A stretch of DNA of 64,000 nt, from NCBI GenBank assembly GCA_037447605.1, contig CM074809.1:1044689-1108688 (forward strand), written 5' to 3'. How positions within the stretch are numbered: the stretch's first letter is position 1; every line of letters starts with the position of its first letter. The translations under genes were made by a program, and so were the position numbers. Positions 31,594-46,744 of the stretch are shown here, in pieces. The stretch comes from Zygnema circumcarinatum SAG 698-1b (taxonomy: Eukaryota; Plantae; Zygnematophyceae). Under the pieces are notes generated by a model. It did no database searches. It was given only the letters and a program-made list of their open reading frames with translations, and was not told where the DNA came from.

Positions 31594-34500
31594 ATGTCCG
31601 CCTGCCTCCCGCTCCACCACCTCCTCACCACAGCGCGCCACGTGGCAGTCCGTGGGGCCTTCCTCTCCGTCGATTTCGCAGCCTCAAGCAGCCGGGCAGC
31701 CCTGAGAAGGCGGGCCCTGCAGCAGGCTCTGCGCGCTCCCTCCCGGGCCTGTCCTCGCGTGGGCGCGGCTGGGTCTGCTGCTCGCGCGCTCTCTCTCTCG
31801 CCCTCGGCAGCCATGGCCGCGACCTCTCCCGCTCTGTCGGCTGTTCTGTGGGAGAGGTGCCAGAGGGAAGCCATGGGTGCTCTTCACCACCCCTTTGTGG
31901 TGGGGCTGGCGGCCAACACCCTGCCTCTGGACGCCTTTCAGCACTATGTTGCTCAAGACGCTTTCTTTCTCTCTGCTTTTGCAAAAGCGTAAGGTCTTTT
32001 TGTCTGCCTCAATGATGAGAATTTGCATTTGTCAATCTTCGCTGAAGGGGTTTTCGCATGCACCCGGCGTTTTTTTCTGTGATTTTTCGTACACTTGAAG
32101 GCATTGAAGTTTTTTTTGGGTGTGTTTGGTACTGTCAGTTACGAGCTGGCTAAGGAGTCGGTGAGGGATGACCACGCGAAGAAGGTCCTCGAAGAACAGA
32201 GAGCGGCTGTTGAGCGCGAACTTCAGCTCCATGGTGCATATGCGGAGGTATTGCAACACATTTGCTTTCCATTGCTGAACGTTTCTTCGTTTGGGGCCAC
32301 ATTCCATGGAAAGCCTTCAGCTCGGAACCTGCATCCGACAACCTCTGTGTTTTGAAGAGGTTGCTTCCTGTTGAGAAAAATGCGAGGCTGTTTATGACAA
32401 ATTGCAAAATGCGCAGAATCCGTTAGACGAAGATAGCTGAAGGATGTGTAAGCACTCTCCTTTGTGTCCACCGAATTTATCGGGTTAGAGTTGATAGACT
32501 TAACTTTTGAGAATCCGAGCTCCAAGAGTTGGGTTAAATGATGTTCCTACAGCCCTTTAGTCGTTTTTGGGTTGTGGCTGTAATTTTTTCCTCTATTCTT
32601 GACACATTTTCGTCACAGTCTTGGGGCGTTGATCTCGCGACACATGGCACGCCGAGCTCTGCCACTCTTGCTTACACTTCATTCCTCCTCAGAACAGCCG
32701 GAGAGAACGATCCTGACATAGTAGCACTTTCAGCGGAGAAGGAGGGGGAGCTGAAGGAGAGGAGAGGGAGAGGAGAAGGAGAGGCTTCAGAAGAAATTCG
32801 GGGGACCACAAGGGCAGCAGAAGTTGTGGCAGCCATGGTGCCCTGCATGCGCTTGTATGCCTTTCTGGGGAAGGAGCTGAAGTGGGCTTCCAAGCTGCTT
32901 GAATTGGAGGACACGAATCGATATGAAGAGTGGATGGAGACTTATGCATCGGAGGGATTTGAGGTGAGAAAAGCCTTGAGCGTTTCAGTTAAAATGATTC
33001 AGCTAACAGGTGCAGCTTAACTTTTTTGGACATTGTAATGGGATCTCCTCTTGTAAGAGGGGAAGTGGAATGGATTGAAGAAATAAGGACTCGTACAGTT
33101 GCTCTCGGATAACCCGGCAGACTTTATTGCTGCACCTTCTGAGTGGCTGTTGCAGGCATCAGCCCTGCAACTAGAGACGTTGTTGGACCGCTTGAGTGAA
33201 GGTGCAAGTGAAGAAGTTAGAGAGAAATTGTTGATGTTGTACAGGAGGGCCATGGAGTTGGAAGTTGCATTTTTCGCAGCGCAACCCATACCTCAAGGGA
33301 TGAGGGCACCCTTTGCGATGGGAGGAGCAGGGGATTCTAAAGAAGGCATCTCTCGTAGAGAACTTGTTTTTGCTTGTGACTTTGATTCCACCTGTACGGC
33401 AGAAGATTCAAGTGTCCTTTTACCAGAGCTGGGTTTCATTGCAAGTGAAGCGGAGGGAGAAGGTGCCGATCAGTTGAGTGAGGGAGAGAAGAGGAGGAGC
33501 AGGTGGGAGGAGGTGGCCAATCGCTATGCAGTGGACTTCAAGGAGTTGCTGGATAGCTATCTCTCAAGCAGGGGATCAGGGTTGGACACCAACGAAAGTA
33601 ATGAGCCTTTCAGCAGTCTGAGAAAGTTCCTGGAAAACTTAGCTGAGTTCGAGGTAGAGGCAAACACGAGATTGGAGGCCTCTGAAGTTCTAAGAGGAAT
33701 AAAGAGAGATGACATCGTGAGGAAGGGGAGCCAAACGGCTCTTCGAGAGGGGTGTGGGAGAGTGCTTACGCTTTTGCGTGAGGAGGGAATTCACATCAAC
33801 ATCATTTCAGTGGCATGGAGTCGGAGCTTCATTCGTGGGTCTCTCACCCACGGGTTGGGAGAGGTCACTTTGGCAGGTAACGTGCCATATTTCAAATGTG
33901 TTCTTTGAGGCTCGCAGGGTATAGACTGCATTGAGTGATACTTTCATACGGCTCAATCATGTATTTGAAGATCATTGCATATCGTCAGAACCTCAGTACG
34001 TCCCTCCTCCATCAATTGCCATCCCGTTCCAGTCTATTTCTTCTCTCCTCCCCACCTTGCCCTCCCTCCCTTCTCTCTCGCGTTCCCTCCTCCCCGTCCT
34101 CCCCCCCTTCCATTCGCCTCCCGCCCCCCTCACTCCATTCATTCTCCAACCCCCCCCTTCTCTTCGACCCTCTACCCATCTCCCACCCCTCCCTCTCCCT
34201 CTCTCTTCCCTCACCCTTCATCTTTGAGAGGTTCCAATACTGCTGCAGAGTGCATGTGACCCCTCAACCTATGGGCCCTTTCATCCTTATCCACCCATCA
34301 TAATTCGGCATTTGTTAAGACAGAGAAGCTGCAGCCATTGGTGTGTCCTGTCTTGTAAGCCATTTCTGCCAGGTGTGGATATCCAATCGAATGAGCTTGA
34401 GTTTAACTCCAATGGCGTCTCTACCGGAAAAGTCGTACGGTCCCTTCAAACTGCCATCGATAAGGAGAAAGCCTTTTCCAAGTTATGTGCGACAAATGAG

Positions 34501-34791
34501 CCGGGGAGGACCCATGTCTTTGTGGGAGACAGTGTCACGGATGTGCTCGCCCTTCTGCGTGCGGATGTGGGAGTGATAGTGGGAGAGAATCAGACTTTGG
34601 CAAAGGTACTGGACACTGTCAGCGATATTCAGGTGAGGCCTCTCCTCTCTGCGTCCATTTCCAGAGCACGTGCAGAGAGTAGTAGAGAGAGCAGCCCATC
34701 GCGGAGAATTCTGTACAAGGCGAGGGGCTGGGAGGAGATAGAAGCGTTTTTAGGGTTGGTCGAGTGGACGGATGTTCGCGGCGAAGCTTGA
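31594..34791 (+). CDS. TH2: Bifunctional TenA/HAD thiamine monophosphate phosphatase
   Basis: TenA domain (HPFV...FQHYVAQDAFFL..F...PCMRLYAFLG...Y..W..Y...MELEVAFF) plus HAD motifs CDFDSTCT and FVGDSVTD. Two in-frame ATGs at 31594 and 31813. Confidence 0.93.
33990..34215 (+). repeat. CT-rich low-complexity tract in a TH2 intron
   Basis: Pyrimidine run between exons. Confidence 0.8.
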
Positions 34792-35765: not shown

Positions 35766-36507
35766 GACACGTGGCGCTTCACTCGCTGCCGCCCGCACGT
35801 GCGGTCCATCCCTGTCACTTTTGCCCTCTATGAAATTGCTGCGAAGTTTCAGGTTTGGACGCAAAGGATGGACAGTACGGCCTCAGTCCGTACATCGATC
35901 AGATCCGATCAGGGGGGCAGGCGGCTCTTGTGCTGCCACGTGGTGCGGGACACTGTCAGCTAGTGCGTCCACGTGACAGCTCTGGCGCCTCAGATCTACA
36001 TCTGCCACGCTCCAAGGACGGCCAGGATCGTTTCTAAAACCTTTTCCATATATTTTTGAGACAGATAAGGGGTGCAAATGGAGTATAAGGAACAGTCGCA
36101 AAAATCCAAAAAGGTTACGTTGACCACGAATGGGTGAGGGCCACGTTGACAGACCAAGCGAATATTCCCCGCCCTCCGCTCCCGACAAAACGGGCCCTCC
36201 TCAAAGCGGATCTTTCGATGCCTTCCCGCCTGACAAAGATTCCCACGCACTAACCGACACTATTTTTTTGAGTCTAGCGATTTGGCATTTTTCCTGCCGC
36301 GAGATCACCTGTTGACCACGTGTCCATCGAAGGTCGCTCCAATCTGACGGTGGTTTGCATCGAACATCTGGCACCATCGAAACGACAAACTGCGACGCAG
36401 TTTTGTCGGGCCCGTCTGGGCCGGGCAGTCCCCGGCCGGGCGCTGTCCACCGACATTAGTCGGTGGCGGCGGGCTAACCGGCCGCGCACTCCCTGCGCTG
36501 ACGTGGC
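35766..36507. promoter_or_regulatory. G-box/ABRE cluster upstream of the cupredoxin gene
   Basis: GACACGTGGC 35766, CACGTG 35796, GCCACGTGG 35935, CCACGTGAC 35969, CCACGTGTC 36316, ACGTGGC 36501. Confidence 0.55.
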
Positions 36508-36729
36508 GCCGTGCATGTACGGATTCACACTTGTGGAACGAATATGCCGGGAGGCTGCCTTGGGCGGCAAGCGCCCACTTGCTGCGGCACGCACTGCCGC
36601 CGGCGGCTAAGGTCGGGGGAGGAGAGGGAGTGGTGAGAGAGAGAGAGTGAGAAAGAGGGAGAGGCAACGAGAGAGGGAGGAGTGGAGAGAGGACGAGAGA
36701 AAGAGAGAGGAGTGTCGCGTAACGTCGCA

Positions 36730-38735
36730 ATGGCAAACTCACTTGCTGTGCTGGCAAGTTCCCTCTCGCTCTCCCTCTTCGTCCTTCCCTCACTGTCAGA
36801 ATGCAGCTCTGCCGAGCGGCGAAATGCTGTGTCTCACTCAAGTCCTGACGCGAAGCTCTCTCCCTCTCTGTGACATGCAGGTGGCCACCGCTCTCGTCGC
36901 CATGGTCGTTCTCCAGACCGTCCCCTCAGGTGGGCCACTCTCCCTCTCTCCCACTCTCCCACTCCCCCTCTCTCTCTCTCCCTCTCTTCTCTCTTCCACT
37001 CTCCCTCGAATGCTGCTGACGTTATTGAACCCGGTGCCTTGCGCAGTGAGCGCGGCGGCCCCCGCCCCGGTCCCGGCCCCGACCGCGAAGTGTCTGTTCA
37101 AGAACTGGAAGCTCGGCATCGTGCAGCGCTACGTGGTGGTGTACAAGGGCACGAAGTGCACCTGGACGTGGGCCGACGACCAGTACCATTGCCTCAACTT
37201 CTTCGCGGGACCCGCGCGCTTCACGGGACCCTCCATCATCGGGAAGGGCTCCACGTGGAGCTACACCTTCACGAAGCCCGGGGACTACAAGTACAACTGC
37301 TGCATCCACGCCGCGCAGATGCGGGGACGCATCACCGTGCTTAACAAAGGTGGGTTCGCTCGCCTGCACACCTGCTGAGGGAGGGAGGGAGAGAGGGAGG
37401 GAGGATGGAGGGTGAGAAGGGGGGAGGGGATGAGGGGGAAGGGAAAGGGAGCCAGGGAGGGGTAGGGACAGGGGTAGAAGTTCGGGCAAGACGGCGAATG
37501 TTGGGGGTCGTGGGGGTTGGGGAGGAGAGGGACGTCTGGGCGAAGTGGAGGTACCTCAGCAGGAAGATGGACAACGAATTTAGGGAGTAGGGGATGTGGG
37601 CAGTGAGAAATGGGTGTGGGAGAAGTAGAGAAAGGAAGTATAGGGACAAGAGTGAGGACAGGTAAAGGGAGGGAGATAGGTAGAGTAGGACAGGTTTTAA
37701 ACAATAAACGAGCGATCGACAGCATCCTTAAGTGAAAGGTGGTAGGTGGTGAGGCTAAGAAGTGTGGAAGGGGAGTAGGAGTGTGGCAGTGAGGGAAAGT
37801 GTGATGAAATGAGATAAAGGATTGGAGGAATGATTGAGCGCTTGAAAGGACGGAACTAATAGGTAGAAGTGAATGGTTAGAGGAAGTGCGGAATGTGAAC
37901 ATGGAGCGGAGTGGTTCTCGGAATAATTTAAAAGATTAAGTGGTAAATGGAAGAGAGGAATTGGAGGTGAGGATGAGGAGAGGGAAATAAGGTGGAAATC
38001 TGGTAGTGGACACACGAGTGGAATATTGAAACTTGAGAGTGACAGCTTGAGAGGGTCGTGTGGGCCGCAAGAGGGAAGTGGATGCAAGTGTATCGATATT
38101 GAAAGCATAGACTCAAAGTGAAGAAGCTATTCAGTTATGGTCTTGGAAGGAGAGAGAAGAGAGGGAGCAGTGAAACATAATGAAGAGGCAGGAAATGGAG
38201 CGATTGTTGAAAACGTAAAGGAGCTATGTCGGCTGTAAACAGAGACTATGGGGATGGGGGAAAGTCTAGTGAAGTGGAAATAGTGATATTCCTTTCATCA
38301 TACGCTTTCCTTTCCCTTCTTCTCTACCCCTCCGTCGCAATTCTCCTGCTCACCCTGCTCTCCGTCCTCGTCCGTTTCCACCTCTCCTCCCTCGCCCCCT
38401 CCCTCTCCCTCTACCTGGTCGTCTCCCTCTTCCTCTCCCTCTTCCTCTCCCGCTCCCTCTTCCCCTCCCTCGTCCCCTTCCCTTTCCCCTCCCTCTTCCC
38501 CTCCCTCTCCTCTCATCGTGACACCTTGGCCTTGTCCCTCCCTCCCTCCCTCCCTGCAGTGTGCCCAGTTAACTGCGGCAAGCGATGCTGGGGCGGCAAC
38601 GGCTGCAACGGGCTGTGCCCGTACCCGAAGGTCCGCAACTTCTCGACCTGCACCACGTGCTGCAACGCGGGACGCGCCCCCGGGGACAAGACCGTGGCGG
38701 CGTGCCTCAAGGCCTGCCAGAAGAAGAAGAAGTAG
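36730..38735 (+). CDS. Secreted type-1 copper (cupredoxin) protein with C-terminal 10-Cys module, 183 aa
   Basis: Exons 36730-36753, 36881-36929, 37047-37349 and 38560-38735 sum to 552 nt, in frame. Signal peptide MANSLAVLVATALVAMVVLQTVPSVSA. Ligand set YHC...YKYNCCIHAAQMRG. Tail CPVNCGKRCWGGNGCNGLC...CTTCC...CLKAC. Confidence 0.85.
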
Positions 38736-39101
38736 AGGGCCACTTTAGGGGCCGGGCCGAGCCGGGGTTCTCGGTAGAGGGTATTATGGGTTAGGAGGGG
38801 CGGGAGGGTGGGGAGACGGACGAATAAAAGAGGACGAGACGGGTCCGAGGAGGAGGAGAAGGAGAAGAAGATCGTCGAAAGTGAGGTTGAGCTTTTTTGG
38901 GGTAAATTTTTTAAGTCAGGGTAGTAACATTTATTTTCTAAGTGAGGAATTTTGGGCCGTTTCTTTTTCCTTTGCGCGGTTTAATTTGATGGATCCTGGG
39001 TGGGTCTTGCAAGCAGATTTCAGAGTCGCTAGGTAGCGAAACTCGCTGCCACCGCCATCTGGAAAGAGAAGTGTGCTCAAACTAGTATACGGAAAAGTAA
39101 A

Positions 39102-40027: not shown

Positions 40028-43000
40028 TCATCGAACCCTGAGGACCACGTCGGGCACCTCCGCGTCTTCCCCATCTGCGTCCGTACAAGTAACGGAGAAT
40101 GTGATGGAACCATCCAAACCGCTGAGGGGAGTTTTCCCCACAACGGAGACCAGTTCAGTGATGGGCATGGGCATCCGCTCTTGAATTTTCTTCTTGTTTA
40201 GAAATTCTGCATAAAGAAGGCTCTTCCCGTGCGATATCATGCTTATCTGCAACTCCCCAACCGAAAATTTCTCACTAAGTTCATGAACTGCACAAAAGGG
40301 TCCACTGTTTGACATTTTCACAAACGAGAAGAACGTGCTTTCATGGGAGCCCTTCTCTAAGAACTACGCGTGCAGCTAAACCGTACACGTCTGAGAGATG
40401 CAGTCGGTGCAACGAACATGGTCTGTTCCATGTCATAAATCGGAAAAAATGTACAGAACATGCACCAGGGTTGTCCTCAACAAAGTTTTACATGAGATGC
40501 ATTGGAGGTGGCCCACCTCCAACCCGTGCAGCTGCTTGAACGCGGACAAGAAGCTCTCCAAAGTGAGTCCCCTCCCATCCATCTCAAAGCGGTCCCACAA
40601 TGTCCACACTAATGGCTTTCCTGTCGTTGTCGCCACCTGCTTCCCATATGCACACACAGCTCTTCCGACTTTTGTAGGCAGTCCCCAATGCCGCTCAGCG
40701 TCCAACAACCAGTTGAAATAAACGAGCAAATAAATAAGCCCAAATTTCACCTCTCTCTAGTGCCCAACAACCCCGTGGTGAATAGGACTTAGCCTTTTGA
40801 CAAGCTCGAAATCACATTGTAGCCAAGGAATACTCCAGGACAACCATAACTTAAATGACGCAGTCTCCAAAACGGGCAAGTAATGAGTCTCTTTTGAGGA
40901 GGGTTATGTGACCTACCGTTGTGGCGATAGCTTTCCGTGGCTGTGCCTGCACGATGAGGGGCACCGCAAGGTTAAAGAAGGAATGCCGAAAGTCTTCCAG
41001 CACCTTCTTCAGAGCCAACTTGTACACCTCCAAACACATGAACCCTCCCACCACAGCTGCTGTGGTAGCCATGGCAGGAACTATGTTCGCTCCTGCTAAG
41101 CGTGCCTGTCAGCCATGGCCACCCCCTTTGCATCCCTTAGAAGGAGGGAAGGGAGTAGGGCAAAAGTGCAGTAGTGGCTTGCTCAATGCAGTAAGAACAT
41201 GACTAAAAGAAAACTAAAATAACTGGTCCTCAGTGAGCGCCCTCGATCTCAAGCTTTGCGTGATCGCAATTCACACGGACCACTCTGCAAATGGGACGAG
41301 TGATTCCCTTTCTTTGAGAAAAAGCAAGTCGAGCTTTAGAATAGTTCATAGTGAGAAAGGTGCAAAGCAGGTCTGGGCACAAGTTCAATGCGCAGAAACG
41401 AGAAGGGCATGGGGATATTCGAAATATACTCTTTCCCATCATACAAGCTCGATACAAGGAAACGTTTTGTAGCACAAACGAAATGCTCACAAAGAATAAA
41501 ACAATTGAGTGATGTAAACTATCTACCGGCCCTTATCCTCTCCACTTACGCAGATATTTCCGCCATTGCTCTCTTACTGATTCCAAAAGACCTGTGCTCC
41601 TCTCTTAGAGCGCATCTCAGCCGTACCTGCAACCGATCGCTGCCCGGAATGCCATAGTTTTGAGCTCTCAAATTTGCCGCGGCAGCGACAAACTCCGCCG
41701 CAAAACTGACTTCATCATCGGGATCGAACTGCAGAGGAGTAAGGCGGTAGCCCTGCCAGCTTAGCCAACCCCAAATCGCCACGTCAGACAAAACCCTGTA
41801 CACGAACAAGGCATGCTAGTTTGTCCTTTTCTGCGAGTATTTTGCGAGGATGGGGGAGTCGCGGGGGGGTGTCATCGCTAAACTCCACAAATTATAGGTT
41901 GCAGGAAGGAACAAATCCTTTTGAATGTCAGCTGCACTCCCATTCCAAAGGAGCCTTCGGACTGGAAAACAGAGCGGTTTGAGGTGGACAGACAGATGAT
42001 AATACAGCACAAATCTCACAATGCTGCTGCTTTACTGAAGAAAGCGAGGACACTAAATATATCGCTAGAAGAGCCAAGGGAAAGGTTTGCAAACCCATAA
42101 AGGAGGAAAAAAGCTATTTGAATACGTACTGCCAGCGACGCAGGAGAAGGCAGCTCCTTAGCCAGCCGCTCGCATTCGCTTGCTTCTGCAGCATCTTCTC
42201 CTGTCATGTTCAGCCCATGCTGATTTCTCAATTCACTGTCATTCACTGCGATTTTCACCCCCTCCTGGACCACGTCTCCCCCGAGCGAGAAACCACATCA
42301 GAACATAATCGATTTTTGATGCATAAAGATTATTGACATAAACCAGGGTTGATATCTTCATACACCCTAACAAAATGCACAGGTCAGAGGAGCCAGCCTT
42401 CTCCAAAAAAAAAATGACAAAAGAGTCTCTGCAAATTCCTTCCTTTAGACCTCCTCACCTTCGGCTCAAAGGGGGGCAGCACCATATCTTTCAAAGGAGC
42501 AAGAAATGCGGCCCGATCGTGGCAGGCCTTCAGTCCATAGACCTGCGCTTGGAGGTTCGCAGCGGCCATAATGAAGTCCAGATGCATTGAATCTTGAGGA
42601 TTGAATATGAGGGGCTTAGGCGCCCTCTTTGTGCCGCTCCAAAATGGAATGCCGGCTGTTGTGGTCATGTTGTGTGGAAAATTATGAAGAAGCTGCATGG
42701 AAAAGTTCACACAACTGTGGGGATAAAGAAATAGACATACTGAATTAAAGGAGGGATAATTTAGAGAGCAGATGGGATAAGCGAGAACAGGCAGATATAC
42801 TATTCATTATAACTCGACAAGAATTGGTAGAACTTCAAGATTTGTATTCACCTGCTTTATAGTATTCACAAAAAGGTCCTCAAACTGAAGCCTTGCCCAC
42901 TCTACACACGCCTCAAAGCTGCGCCCAACAGACCAAACTGGATTGAAAGATTAAAAAAAAAAAAAAGCAGAGAGGGAAAGCTAAGGGGAAAGAAGGTCGT

Positions 43001-46000
43001 CAAACGATAATCCCTATCTGTAAAGGAATGTGAGGACATTTATGAACAGATAAATGCATACGAAAAAAATCGCATAGCGCATACAAGTTGATGACTAAGA
43101 AGTGGCCATATAGTCAACCTGAGAGGCCGTCTCTTCACCAGAGCATCATACAGCACTTGCAAAACTGGCAGCTGCGAGCTTGGAGGCTGCTTCAGCTGTT
43201 GATCCGCAAAATTTTTGCGCCCCAAATACGCATTCACGCCTTCCGGTCTCTCCGTGAAGAGCGTTGAAAATGCGTCGACAGCCCACTGAATTGTGTGCTC
43301 AGGTGCATAGGGGAAGTTTTTTAGGGTACAAATAGGGACACCCTTATGCTCCGGAGGGTCTCTGCTGGAAGCATACATTTCCGACTGGTGGGGCACAAAC
43401 ACCTGAAATGGAGCCCAAAAGGAGAGCAGTTGCCAATCCTTAGTCTGCCGCATAAAGGAGAGGAGACGCAAGCTCGCAGAAGGAGGATTCTGAAGTTTAG
43501 CCCATTTGAAGTGGAGGAGAGATTCACACCTGAACGCTCCCCTTTGTGCCATACTTGCCCCCGTCCACCATGGGCTTGCGGAAATATACACAGCGGGCAT
43601 CTATGTACAAGCGAGAAGTGGCACTATCGACTGCACTCATGACCCCTGCTCCAAGTCATGCAACAGCAGACACCCTGTAAGTGGCGAAGACAGTCGAAAT
43701 CACTGACCATAGCGTGACCCAAATCTCGTAAACTAAACTTAAATTAAGCACAACCTCTTTAGGTTTTTACTACTTGCTTGTACAGCCGAACCAAGGCGAC
43801 AAATTTCTCCTGCCCCATCTATCCAAAACCCAGCTGAACCCTCATCCTCACCTGATAACGACTCGAAAAGCGCGGACCCCAAAAGAGCCTCTGACTCCCT
43901 CTCTAAACGTGCCTCAATAGCCCTTATGTCCACCTCGGGATTGATACTCCGCAAAGCTCGAGCAGCTGCAGGAGCCTTTGCACGCTGTAAATCCCCCGAA
44001 TTGTAGAGCCCCTGAGAGGGAAGGTTGCCCTTCTGCACAGAGTCGGGGTCGATGATGGAGAGGCGGCCATGGGGGCCCGCACCCACACCCATAAGGGCGA
44101 GGTTTTTCAGCACTTCGCAGCCAATAGCACCTGCTCCTGCAACCAACCACTGGGTACTCGCCCACCCATTGAAGGGAATAAACAAGCAGTCGGTTCGCAA
44201 TGGTGAAAGGAGTGCTATGGGGGTGACTGTGCGGTTGGAAACGAAGGCATTTCGGAGGGGGTTCTTCAGAGGCAGCATGCAAGTAGTTGCTCAACATATA
44301 TGAAAATTAACGCCTAGATGAAGGGAGGCAGAAATGCAATCTGCAATCCGGTTGACCTTCAGTAAGCGACACTGGCTACGGATAAGTGGTGTGGTACATC
44401 GCCAAGCCGATTACAGTACAGAAGCCCCTAGCTGAAGCAGTTTGGCGTAACGGCCCACGAACTTTCTCATTTATTGCATCAAACAGAGAATTGGATACAG
44501 CTAGCATAAACTGGGCCTCACCTGTTGGTTTTCGAGGATCTCCTGAAAGCTTCCGCCATACAATGCCACTTGTCCACTATAACGAGAGTCGTGATTCTCA
44601 AGTTCTGCGGGGGACAGCTCCTCTTCAGGCAGACACTCTGTTGCTTCAAAATACAGCCATTGCTGTAATGGCATGAAGACTCGCGTGCAAGCCTGCGGCA
44701 CATTGCTGCAAGGAGAGGTTCAGCAAACTTCTTTTCAGACCAGTGATGATCCAGCGGCATGCACAAAAGTAGTCTTGCTAGTCATGCATTGTCTGCAAGA
44801 CGGTATCCGCAATGCTTTCAGACTAATAACTGTGGCTGGGACAATAGCTAGACACAAAAGTTTGCAGTCACACGCTGTAGCACCACTTTAGCATACTAAT
44901 GCTCTTACTTGATATTGCAACGCTCCACCGATACAATCATATGAAGCTACAACGATAGCATCAAATTCCCATCAACGAATGAACTAAACAACAGCATTGG
45001 GGAAGCTACAACAATTCGCCTAGAGTACAATGGTGGCTCTTAAATCTAGCGGGCTTTAATACAGTATGGACTTGGGTAGTTTATGAGTGCCATGGATCCG
45101 TGGCTGGCCTTTATGGCGACTCTGGAGCACAGTTCCCGGGAAAGCTTCTGCCTTCGCAAACATGTCGATTCACATGGTCTAGCGATTAAATCAATACTAC
45201 GCCCTGTGAGCAAAGTTGGATGACCGCCCTACAATTTATCTTCAAAGAAGCATCTACGTCAAGACATTTGGCCTGACTCTTAAATGAATATACAGACGGA
45301 ACAAAAAAACACTGACCTTGAAGACCTCCTGGGCTGCAATGCCGCCTGCTAGAGAAACAATGGGGCTTAACTCCAGTCCCCTTCCCTGAAGAACAGCTTT
45401 CAAAAGTGCTTCATCTAGCTCTGTTGTAAGGCGAGTCTGCAAATTTATATCTGAGTCTGCAACAACTGGAAGAGCCCTCCCCTGAACCCCTTCTGCATCG
45501 TCGGTTCTCACAGTCCCCTCTGGCAAACCAGCACCAGTGTGCCCATTAACTCTCAGCTCATCCCGCCCGTCAAGCGCTACAGGATGCACAGCAGGTGTGG
45601 TGGGCATAGTCTGTAAATATTCCCGAGCTAAATTTCTAATTTCCCCTTGCGCAGGAACAGAAAACTTCTCGGACTTGACTGCAGATTGATGTTCGAAGGT
45701 ATCTAGAGCTCTGAAAATTGCATGAAGCTGCTGAGATGCTCCAGGCCTTCCAGAGTCTACATCAGCAAATTGGGGTACTAGTAGAGAGTCCTCTAGAGAG
45801 AGGAAAGGTACAGTTTTCGGTCGGGGGCTGAACCGGATATAACCTCCAGATTTATATGGTTTATACCCTCTACTATCGTCCGGAATGGTGAAGGAGGACG
45901 GGCCTGTAACTGTCACAACGCGAGCCCTACCATCCTTGAGCTCTTGCATGCCCTCTATGGCTGTAAATATGACGAAGTCCCCTGTTTCCAGGTTATGCCG

Positions 46001-46744
46001 CTGATCTTCAGCAATGGTGACTGTTGCAGGAAAGTCCAGTGTGATGCTTTCCACTGGCAATAGACCACCACCACCTCCTCTCCTACCTCCTCCGCCCCCC
46101 CACGGCTCGCCTGTAGCATCATAAACCTCAAAATTCTCCCCAAAATCTGAGAAGACGTAACAACACAGCCCGCATGTCCGTGCAATAATAAACTTCGCCC
46201 CTCTTTCTCGGCAGTAACAATTTAATTCACAAAGACTTGAAAGTGAATTGTTGCAAGCGGCCACAACAGCAGTTGCACTCCGAAGCAACGCCTCATCTTC
46301 CATAACTACATCTTTCTCCCCCACATCACCGGAACTTGATGTGCGGGTTTCCGGTGTTAAAGTTAGGTTTAGAGTTTCCCTGCAAACAGCCTGCACCACG
46401 GATGTACAACCCAGCTGGCGCAGTCGATCAGCAGCAGCGACCGCGCGATGCCTCCCAATATCCTCCGCTCTAAAAAGGCCTCCAGCTCCTAAATCAGAGA
46501 GTTTCACAAGAGCATCATCTACGAGGGTGAGTGTTCCGACTCCACTGAGGGCGAGTATAGTTGAAATCTGAGTCCCCAGGGCGCCTGAACCCCAAACCAC
46601 TACATGGCTGCTGGATATGGCGGTCATCGCCTCCCTCCCCACAGTAAGAATTTGACGGGAGAACCGCATCTCGTCCATGTTGTCTGCGGAACTCTTTCCC
46701 TGCACTGCCGTCTCCTCCTGTGCCTTCCTTCTTTTGGAGCCCAA
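40028..46744 (-). CDS. Ubiquitin-activating enzyme E1 (UBA1/UBA6 family), divergent paralog
   Basis: About 12 exons: first adenylation domain FSRQ...GSGALG, second GAGAIGCEVLKN, catalytic PICTLKNFP (Cys codon 43328-43330), FWSGTKRAP, C-terminal ubiquitin-fold domain WTLWDRF...EVPDV. Confidence 0.93.

Follow-up and report, generated by a model that had tools for sequence, protein, structure and literature searches.

A spliced gene of the alga Zygnema circumcarinatum for a predicted secreted, basic blue copper protein with a ten-cysteine module

The locus and its product

The 64,000-nucleotide stretch of Zygnema circumcarinatum SAG 698-1b considered here (assembly GCA_037447605.1, contig CM074809.1, positions 1,044,689 to 1,108,688 of the forward strand, hereafter the window and numbered from its first letter) carries on its plus strand a gene of four exons whose coding sequence (CDS) extends from 36730 to 38735, from an ATG at 36730 to a TAG at 38733-38735. 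The spliced CDS of 552 nucleotides (nt) encodes a product of 183 amino acids (aa), hereafter the window protein, which displays in order a signal peptide (residues 1-27), a stretch rich in Ala and Pro (residues 28-38), a cupredoxin domain (residues 39-125) and a module containing ten cysteines (residues 127-183), the last two being separated by a linker of 1-2 residues. The gene is transcribed and its four exons are spliced as modelled. Indeed, a single Logan contig from the public run X2 (1474 nt, depth 57) crosses all three exon junctions, including that of exons 3 and 4, on whose splicing an earlier note about this DNA, made from the sequence alone, had made its interpretation depend. The transcript contig and its translation also bear out the layout that this note had drawn, with the Cys-rich module on a spliced exon of its own, and the features that it had listed (signal-like N-terminus, Ala/Pro stretch, YHC, YKYNCCIHAAQM and KKKK end) are all present.

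The signal peptide consists of a short n-region, a hydrophobic core of 15 residues and the residues V-S-A preceding a predicted cut after A27. This 27-residue N-terminus is of the endoplasmic reticulum (ER) type and includes neither the Ser/Thr-rich stromal part nor the long Ser/Thr-rich presequence of a bipartite plastid/lumen transit peptide, in keeping with what had been noted before. Since the N-terminus is short and hydrophobic and carries V-S-A, since no long Ser/Thr-rich presequence precedes it and since the total number of cysteines is odd (15), the protein is predicted to enter the ER and the secretory route. No glycosylphosphatidylinositol (GPI) signal was found in the window protein. 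The mature protein has a net charge of +20 and the mature proteins of the clade to which it belongs (see below) range from +16 to +20, to be compared with a mean of -3.1 (standard deviation 4.0) among 563 related domains.

Closest relatives

When 1.84 billion cluster representatives were searched exhaustively with HMMER, 2181 relatives were retrieved at E<=1e-3. The top ranks are occupied by long prokaryotic proteins harbouring 5-7 tandem cupredoxin repeats, the summed scores of which inflate their rank. When relatives are compared domain by domain, the nearest are P0018 (183 aa, 51% identity), a protein from the transcriptome of Netrium digitus in EukProt, P0090 (116 aa, 41%), encoded by the environmental contig L081 of the Joint Genome Institute (JGI), and P0118 (185 aa, 38%), a EukProt transcript. 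The plan of P0018 and P0118 matches that of the window protein, as both proteins include an equivalent N-terminal signal peptide, a cupredoxin, a Pro-rich linker and the ten-cysteine module. These three relatives and the window protein form the clade of four discussed throughout.

A profile search of a collection of 5.8 billion proteins found no further member of the clade, and the window protein itself is also missing from it; a word-indexed search using the read-through open reading frame (ORF) as cupredoxin query found nothing. A metagenome scan for the cupredoxin with the four additional cysteines that characterize the clade found one locus only, 39% identical and presumably bacterial, and a viral scan for the same clade found no relative. 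Full-text literature on cupredoxins and blue copper proteins of zygnematophytes yielded no paper on this family. The earlier note had considered the system as undescribed: this is plausible for the family, and in particular for the Cys-rich tail and for the extra disulfides proposed below, whereas the blue copper protein type is in itself ordinary.

A cupredoxin of the plastocyanin/azurin family

The cupredoxin matches the Pfam family PF00127 (plastocyanin/azurin) over positions 17-98 of the 99 of the profile, with 33.6 bits for a cut-off of 21.2 (E 5.2e-8), and the phytocyanin family PF02298 gave no match at E<=10 for the window protein, P0018, P0118 or P0090. In NCBIfam, similarities to amicyanin, halocyanin and plastocyanin are all below threshold, the equivalog level being reached neither for amicyanin (TIGR02657, 30.6 bits for a cut-off of 110.2) nor for plastocyanin (TIGR02656, 20.5 bits for a cut-off of 87.85). 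By sequence, the nearest proteins of known structure are two copper enzymes, 9cck (E 5.8e-8) and 6hbe, matched through the cupredoxin domain at their C-terminus; amicyanin and then plastocyanin come next. The AlphaFold2 model of P0018, the 51% identical relative used as a stand-in for the window protein, has a predicted local distance difference test score (pLDDT) of 95-98 over the cupredoxin, and Foldseek matched this model to plastocyanins and amicyanins with a probability of 1.0; no phytocyanin is found among its top 30 reviewed structural matches. Both the model and the Foldseek matches thus indicate the Greek-key beta-sandwich fold for this domain. Globally, the profile matches and the aligned ligand columns show that the cupredoxin is a member of the plastocyanin/azurin family in which the four predicted copper ligands are all retained, and, judging from the same comparisons, it is neither a phytocyanin, nor a photosynthetic plastocyanin, nor an amicyanin. 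The suggestion of the earlier note that the domain is of the plastocyanin/amicyanin kind rather than a phytocyanin is therefore upheld by PF00127, PF02298 and the nearest structures.

The candidate type-1 copper site is composed of H72, C109, H112 and M116, the last three lying on a C-x2-H-x3-M ligand loop. These four columns are kept in 638, 620, 624 and 605, respectively, of 647 related domains, and all four ligands are present in each of the four members of the clade. The clade also displays cysteines of its own. C73 directly follows the ligand H72, and C110 directly follows the ligand C109; both cysteines occur together in exactly 4 of the 647 domains, which are those of the clade, and never singly. 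C62 is restricted to the same four domains, and C40 is shared by three clade members, the remaining one having its cysteine shifted by one position. In solved cupredoxins, the residue that follows the first His ligand and the residue that follows the Cys ligand contact each other. Because C73 and C110 co-occur and occupy these contacting positions, it is reasonable to infer that they form a disulfide that staples the copper site. The other two cysteines, C40 and C62, would form a pair tying strand 1 to strand 3.

The ten-cysteine module

The module carries cysteines at residues 127, 131, 135, 141, 145, 156, 159, 160, 174 and 178, all ten of which are invariant across the window protein, P0018 and P0118. 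The spacing is C-x3-C-x3-C-x5-C-x3-C-x10-C-x2-CC-x13-C-x3-C; the pattern proposed earlier agrees with it at every interval save the one between CC and the next cysteine, which spans 13 residues and not 12. The modules of the three proteins have net charges of +10, +10 and +11, and none of them contains more than one acidic residue (+10 and a single acidic residue in the window protein).

None of the three modules matches a Pfam or NCBIfam model at E<=10, and no relative was found in the word-indexed protein collection, in metagenome contigs (scanned for the pattern) or in viral contigs. Two known types were considered and rejected. GASA/snakin (PF02704), which came to mind for its CX3CX3C...CX3C...CX2CC spacing, gave no Pfam match at E<=10, and no solved snakin was matched in the PDB. 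For the Cys-rich repeats of myxobacterial type, the absence of any Pfam or NCBIfam match at E<=10 likewise led to rejection; the likeness to bacterial CxxxCxGKxCGxDGCGGxC repeats proposed in the earlier note thus finds no support, the leads to Cys-rich proteins of Myxococcota among the features of a protein atlas reaching at most 0.74, below the level of 0.9 treated as meaningful.

AlphaFold2 run on exon 4 alone places helices at module residues 27-35 and 43-54, and two independent runs (full-length P0018, and exon 4 of the window alone) agree on a helix-loop-helix in the second, C-terminal half of the module, with a pLDDT of about 65-74. The two predicted helices carry C156/C160 and C174/C178, respectively, so that the half reads C156-x3-C160...C174-x3-C178, a CX3C-x13-CX3C arrangement (n=13) that is invariant in the three modules and conforms to CX3C-Xn-CX3C, the signature of plant alpha-hairpinins (PMC7191063). 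A profile built from the three modules had a single match in the PDB, the alpha-hairpinin trypsin inhibitor BWI-2c, at a marginal E of 0.056; this match was lost when the profile was limited to the C-terminal half, and also when one sequence served as the query. Foldseek searches using the module model returned only bromodomain helices at E 6-10, which are meaningless. The resemblance of the predicted half-module to an alpha-hairpin is therefore a lead and not a classification.

Proposed function and its alternatives

Taken together, the features of the predicted product suggest, with a probability of roughly 0.6, a secreted single-domain type-1 copper electron carrier that its charge and its cationic module would retain in an anionic cell wall or mucilage. 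In such a protein, one of the 15 cysteines would be a copper ligand and the others would pair into seven disulfides, of which the cupredoxin would hold two and the module five. The disulfide between C73 and C110 would staple together two segments that bear ligands and would stiffen the site for extracellular life. The copper centre, with Met as axial ligand, could act as a one-electron shuttle for an extracellular redox partner, for example an oxidase, a peroxidase or a metal reductase. Because the mature protein has a net charge of +20, to which the module contributes +10 with its single acidic residue, it may stick electrostatically to a pectin-rich anionic wall or to mucilage. The module itself might serve as a handle for docking to the wall or to a partner, its C-terminal half being possibly a disulfide-braced helix-loop-helix.

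Several points weigh against this proposal. P0090 comes to an end immediately past its cupredoxin, and contig L081 encodes no module further downstream; since a clade member thus lacks it, the module is an optional addition that is not essential to the role of the cupredoxin. The KKKK end of the window module is not kept in the relatives, and the Gly-rich first half of the module has a pLDDT below 50 in both AlphaFold2 runs. Copper binding, localisation and disulfide pairing are all predictions from sequence, the pairings C73-C110 and C40-C62 resting on co-occurrence and on the general geometry of cupredoxins, and binding to the wall through charge is only a plausible reading.

The same conserved module, with its net charge of +10 to +11 and almost no acidic residues, could also belong to a defence protein or to the precursor of a defence peptide. 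The active part would then be the cationic ten-cysteine module or its alpha-hairpin half, with an antimicrobial or protease-inhibiting activity, either cut free or displayed by the cupredoxin, which would act as a carrier or as a source of redox activity or reactive oxygen species. The CX3C pairs borne by the two helices predicted in both AlphaFold2 runs and the match to BWI-2c as sole PDB hit of the profile speak for such a function, as does the fact that alpha-hairpinins are cut out of larger multi-domain precursors (PMC7191063). However, the match is marginal and disappears with the two other queries, Foldseek finds nothing meaningful for the module model, and no processing site is evident, the linker of the window protein being of 1-2 residues. 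Furthermore, the copper ligands are conserved throughout, which speaks against a cupredoxin acting as a mere carrier. A defensive function appears rather unlikely, albeit the best placed of the alternatives to an electron carrier.

A role in copper handling, already raised in the earlier note, appears less probable still. The protein would then serve as a buffer, a store or a supplier of copper, either in the wall or along the secretory pathway, the Cys-rich module providing an extra metal site. A complete copper site is present, as judged from the sequence, and cysteines are numerous, but a single buried type-1 site would make a poor store. The count of cysteines rather fits disulfides, as the module has an even number and the cupredoxin has a single one left over, the copper ligand, and their invariant spacing fits a structural knot in an oxidising compartment and not free thiolates. 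Neither a metallothionein-like model nor any model of known copper binding matches the module.

Origin of the gene

The domain type is widespread in GTDB genomes at 35-45% identity, as found by a scan using an alignment of six sequences; it occurs in Actinomycetota, Chloroflexota, Pseudomonadota, several archaeal phyla and others. In a maximum-likelihood tree of 64 domains, the four members of the window clade group together with a support of 100/95 and are sister to a set of 31 rows, the 35 rows jointly forming a clade, here called the W-x-W-x-D subfamily, with a support of 98/83. The 31-row set contains many eukaryote-like proteins and a few bacterial ones, "eukaryote-like" being a judgement made from the sequences and contigs and not a database label. 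The eukaryote-like rows include a three-cupredoxin protein of Mesotaenium whose linkers contain SPPPP, proteins that combine linkers rich in Ser, Thr and Pro with C-terminal anchors, one protein encoded on a contig that carries a fragmented MutS gene and one encoded on a Logan contig of run ERR1719453. The bacterial rows correspond to proteins of Bacteroidota with a C-terminal PF18962 domain, to one protein encoded on a contig of more than 1 Mb with bacterial neighbours, and to P0131, classed as bacterial from its sequence. In approximately unbiased (AU) tests, grouping all eukaryote-like rows into one clade is not rejected (p 0.33), and neither is a clade comprising the window clade and the Mesotaenium-type family (p 0.43).

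As the clade lies within a mostly eukaryote-like subfamily and the AU tests allow a single eukaryotic origin, a recent acquisition from bacteria is not supported, and the horizontal acquisition advanced in the earlier note finds no support; an ancient prokaryotic ancestry of the entire subfamily is possible. A recent bacterial transfer, or a bacterial contamination mimicking an algal gene, is largely refuted and very improbable: the overwhelmingly prokaryotic composition of the wider domain family (Actinomycetota, Chloroflexota, archaea and others, at 35-45% identity) and the bacterial or cyanobacterial nature of the nearest reviewed proteins would fit it, but the gene has three spliceosomal introns that are removed in transcripts, its neighbours are eukaryotic (a ubiquitin-activating E1 gene downstream and a TENA-like gene upstream), it is most closely related to algal transcripts that share its architecture, and its position in the tree is as described above.

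Comparison with known proteins

Amicyanin, plastocyanin and the cupredoxin domains of 9cck and 6hbe, all of PF00127, are the best matches of the window protein by both sequence and structure, and share its fold as well as its type-1 site (His/Cys/His/Met), which sits on a short ligand loop near the C-terminus. The window protein differs from them by its predicted routing to the eukaryotic secretory pathway instead of a periplasm or a thylakoid lumen, by its four extra cysteines, by its strongly positive charge and by the Cys-rich module at its C-terminus.

Phytocyanins (plantacyanin or "basic blue protein", uclacyanin and stellacyanin; PF02298) provide a likely functional analogy, as they too are secreted or wall-associated single-domain blue copper proteins, and plantacyanins are also strongly basic. 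In them, a disulfide flanks the copper site, and Pro-rich glycomodules are frequent. The window protein differs from them in belonging to another cupredoxin lineage, in the location of its extra cysteines and in the absence of a GPI signal, and phytocyanins are devoid of its ten-cysteine tail. It might therefore be viewed as a functional analogue of the "basic blue" phytocyanins of land plants that arose on a different cupredoxin lineage. A more elaborate scenario would combine an independent invention of apoplastic blue copper on the plastocyanin/amicyanin scaffold, a clade-specific disulfide stapling the site, a tether to the wall by a new polycationic module with five disulfides, and an alpha-hairpin half of ancestral type endowed with a second, defensive activity; this whole combination is speculative and rather improbable.

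Within the W-x-W-x-D subfamily, other streptophyte-algal proteins (P0006, P0079 and P0096) are secreted and have Pro-rich (SPPPP) linkers. They differ from the window clade by their two or three tandem cupredoxins and by the absence of the four extra cysteines and of the ten-cysteine module, and they form a separate clade (99/96) whose joint monophyly with the window clade is allowed by the AU test given above. P0006 is the gene model ME000243S04013 of Mesotaenium endlicherianum (JGI Mesen1). Its cupredoxins are joined by extensin-like linkers, SPPPP-containing and rich in Lys, which make it a cupredoxin-extensin chimera.

The alpha-hairpinins (BWI-2c, EcAMP1 and MiAMP2, among others) are, like the C-terminal half of the window module, cationic, and share with it the two CX3C motifs on what is predicted as a helix-loop-helix. 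By contrast, the window module has six further cysteines and an unmodelled Gly-rich N-terminal half, its match to BWI-2c is not robust, and it is fused to a cupredoxin and not to a vicilin or included in a tandem cassette (PMC7191063).

Significance

Land-plant phytocyanins act in wall chemistry and in signalling, and their redox partners are poorly known. The alga studied here carries a predicted secreted basic blue copper protein from a cupredoxin lineage other than theirs, and the named relative of this protein is a transcript of Netrium, one of the conjugating green algae, which are the algal group closest to land plants. The pair of cysteines that flanks copper ligands has no described counterpart and represents a natural experiment in the stapling of a type-1 site; the conserved, cationic ten-cysteine module has no described counterpart either. 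If the protein binds copper and is located in the wall, it would offer a small and tractable model for the rise of wall-bound electron carriers before or alongside phytocyanins, and also for the role of a new disulfide-rich domain. If it is an ordinary electron carrier, the result would be the correct annotation of a gene whose product was not found in the protein collection searched.

Features of the gene and its surroundings

The coordinates are given in Table 1. The blocks of the X2 contig align to 36400-36752, 36880-36926, 37044-37347 and 38558-38618, and the exon and intron edges were set after allowing for the letters shared at each joint of the contig. For intron 1, the joint 36752>36880 has two shared letters and a shift of +1 gives GC..AG, as confirmed by the spliced transcript contig. 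For intron 2, the blocks 36880-36926 and 37044-37347 are contiguous in the contig and share the three letters "cag". For intron 3, moving the cut of the joint 37347>38558 by +2 gives GT..AG.

Table 1. Exons, introns, key codons and neighbouring genes, in window coordinates
Feature	Position	Strand	Description
Upstream neighbour	32538-34791	+	TENA-like gene
Exon 1	36730..36753	+	ATG and first 8 codons of the signal peptide; X2 contig unspliced from 36400 to 36752/3, then joins 36881
Intron 1	36754..36880	+	127 nt, GC-AG, phase 0; donor ctg/GCAAGT, acceptor GCAG/gtg (slash marks the cut)
Exon 2	36881..36929	+	Signal peptide, continued: hydrophobic core, then the first part of the VSA cleavage motif
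Intron 2	36930..37046	+	117 nt, GT-AG, phase 1
Exon 3	37047..37349	+	303 nt, symmetric phase 1-1; Ala/Pro stretch (28-38) and entire cupredoxin (39-125)
Clade-specific Cys codons	C40 37091-93, C62 37157-59, C73 37190-92, C110 37301-03	+	Residue-to-coordinate map
Type-1 ligand codons	H72 37187-89, C109 37298-300, H112 37307-09, M116 37319-21	+	Residue-to-coordinate map
Intron 3	37350..38559	+	1210 nt, GT-AG, phase 1; exactly between cupredoxin and Cys-rich module
Exon 4	38560..38735	+	57-aa ten-cysteine module (residues 127-183), KKKK end, then TAG
3' untranslated region	38736..38979	+	X2 transcript contigs (records 9 and 10 on 38589-38979)
Downstream neighbour	40851-46744	-	Ubiquitin-activating E1

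An in-frame stop is found upstream at 36634, with no other in-frame ATG between it and the one at 36730. A start at the ATG at 36876 was rejected, as this codon lies within intron 1 and is missing from the spliced contig. The X2 contig is collinear with the genome over at least 330 nt 5' of the ATG and includes about 709 nt more beyond 36400; the 5' untranslated region (UTR) may be long, about 1 kb, or the contig may have merged with a neighbouring transcript.

In the upstream neighbour, the first long ORF weakly resembles TENA/THI-4 (E 2.8e-4), falling slightly short of the Pfam threshold; none of the ORFs after it has a Pfam match. In the downstream neighbour, the ThiF, E1_FCCH and E1_4HB domains are all encoded by a single ORF of 495 aa.

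Intron 3 is covered by contigs of low depth (7-14x, to be compared with 57x for the exons), which look like pre-mRNA. This intron also contains a GA-rich tract (37378-37398), about 28 nt past the 5' splice site, that is 95% complementary over 21 nt to a CT-rich tract (38535-38555) ending 4 nt before the 3' splice site. This pairing could draw together the ends of the 1.2-kb intron or be a side effect of microsatellites; many weaker GA/CT pairings occur in the introns and the 5' UTR of the gene.

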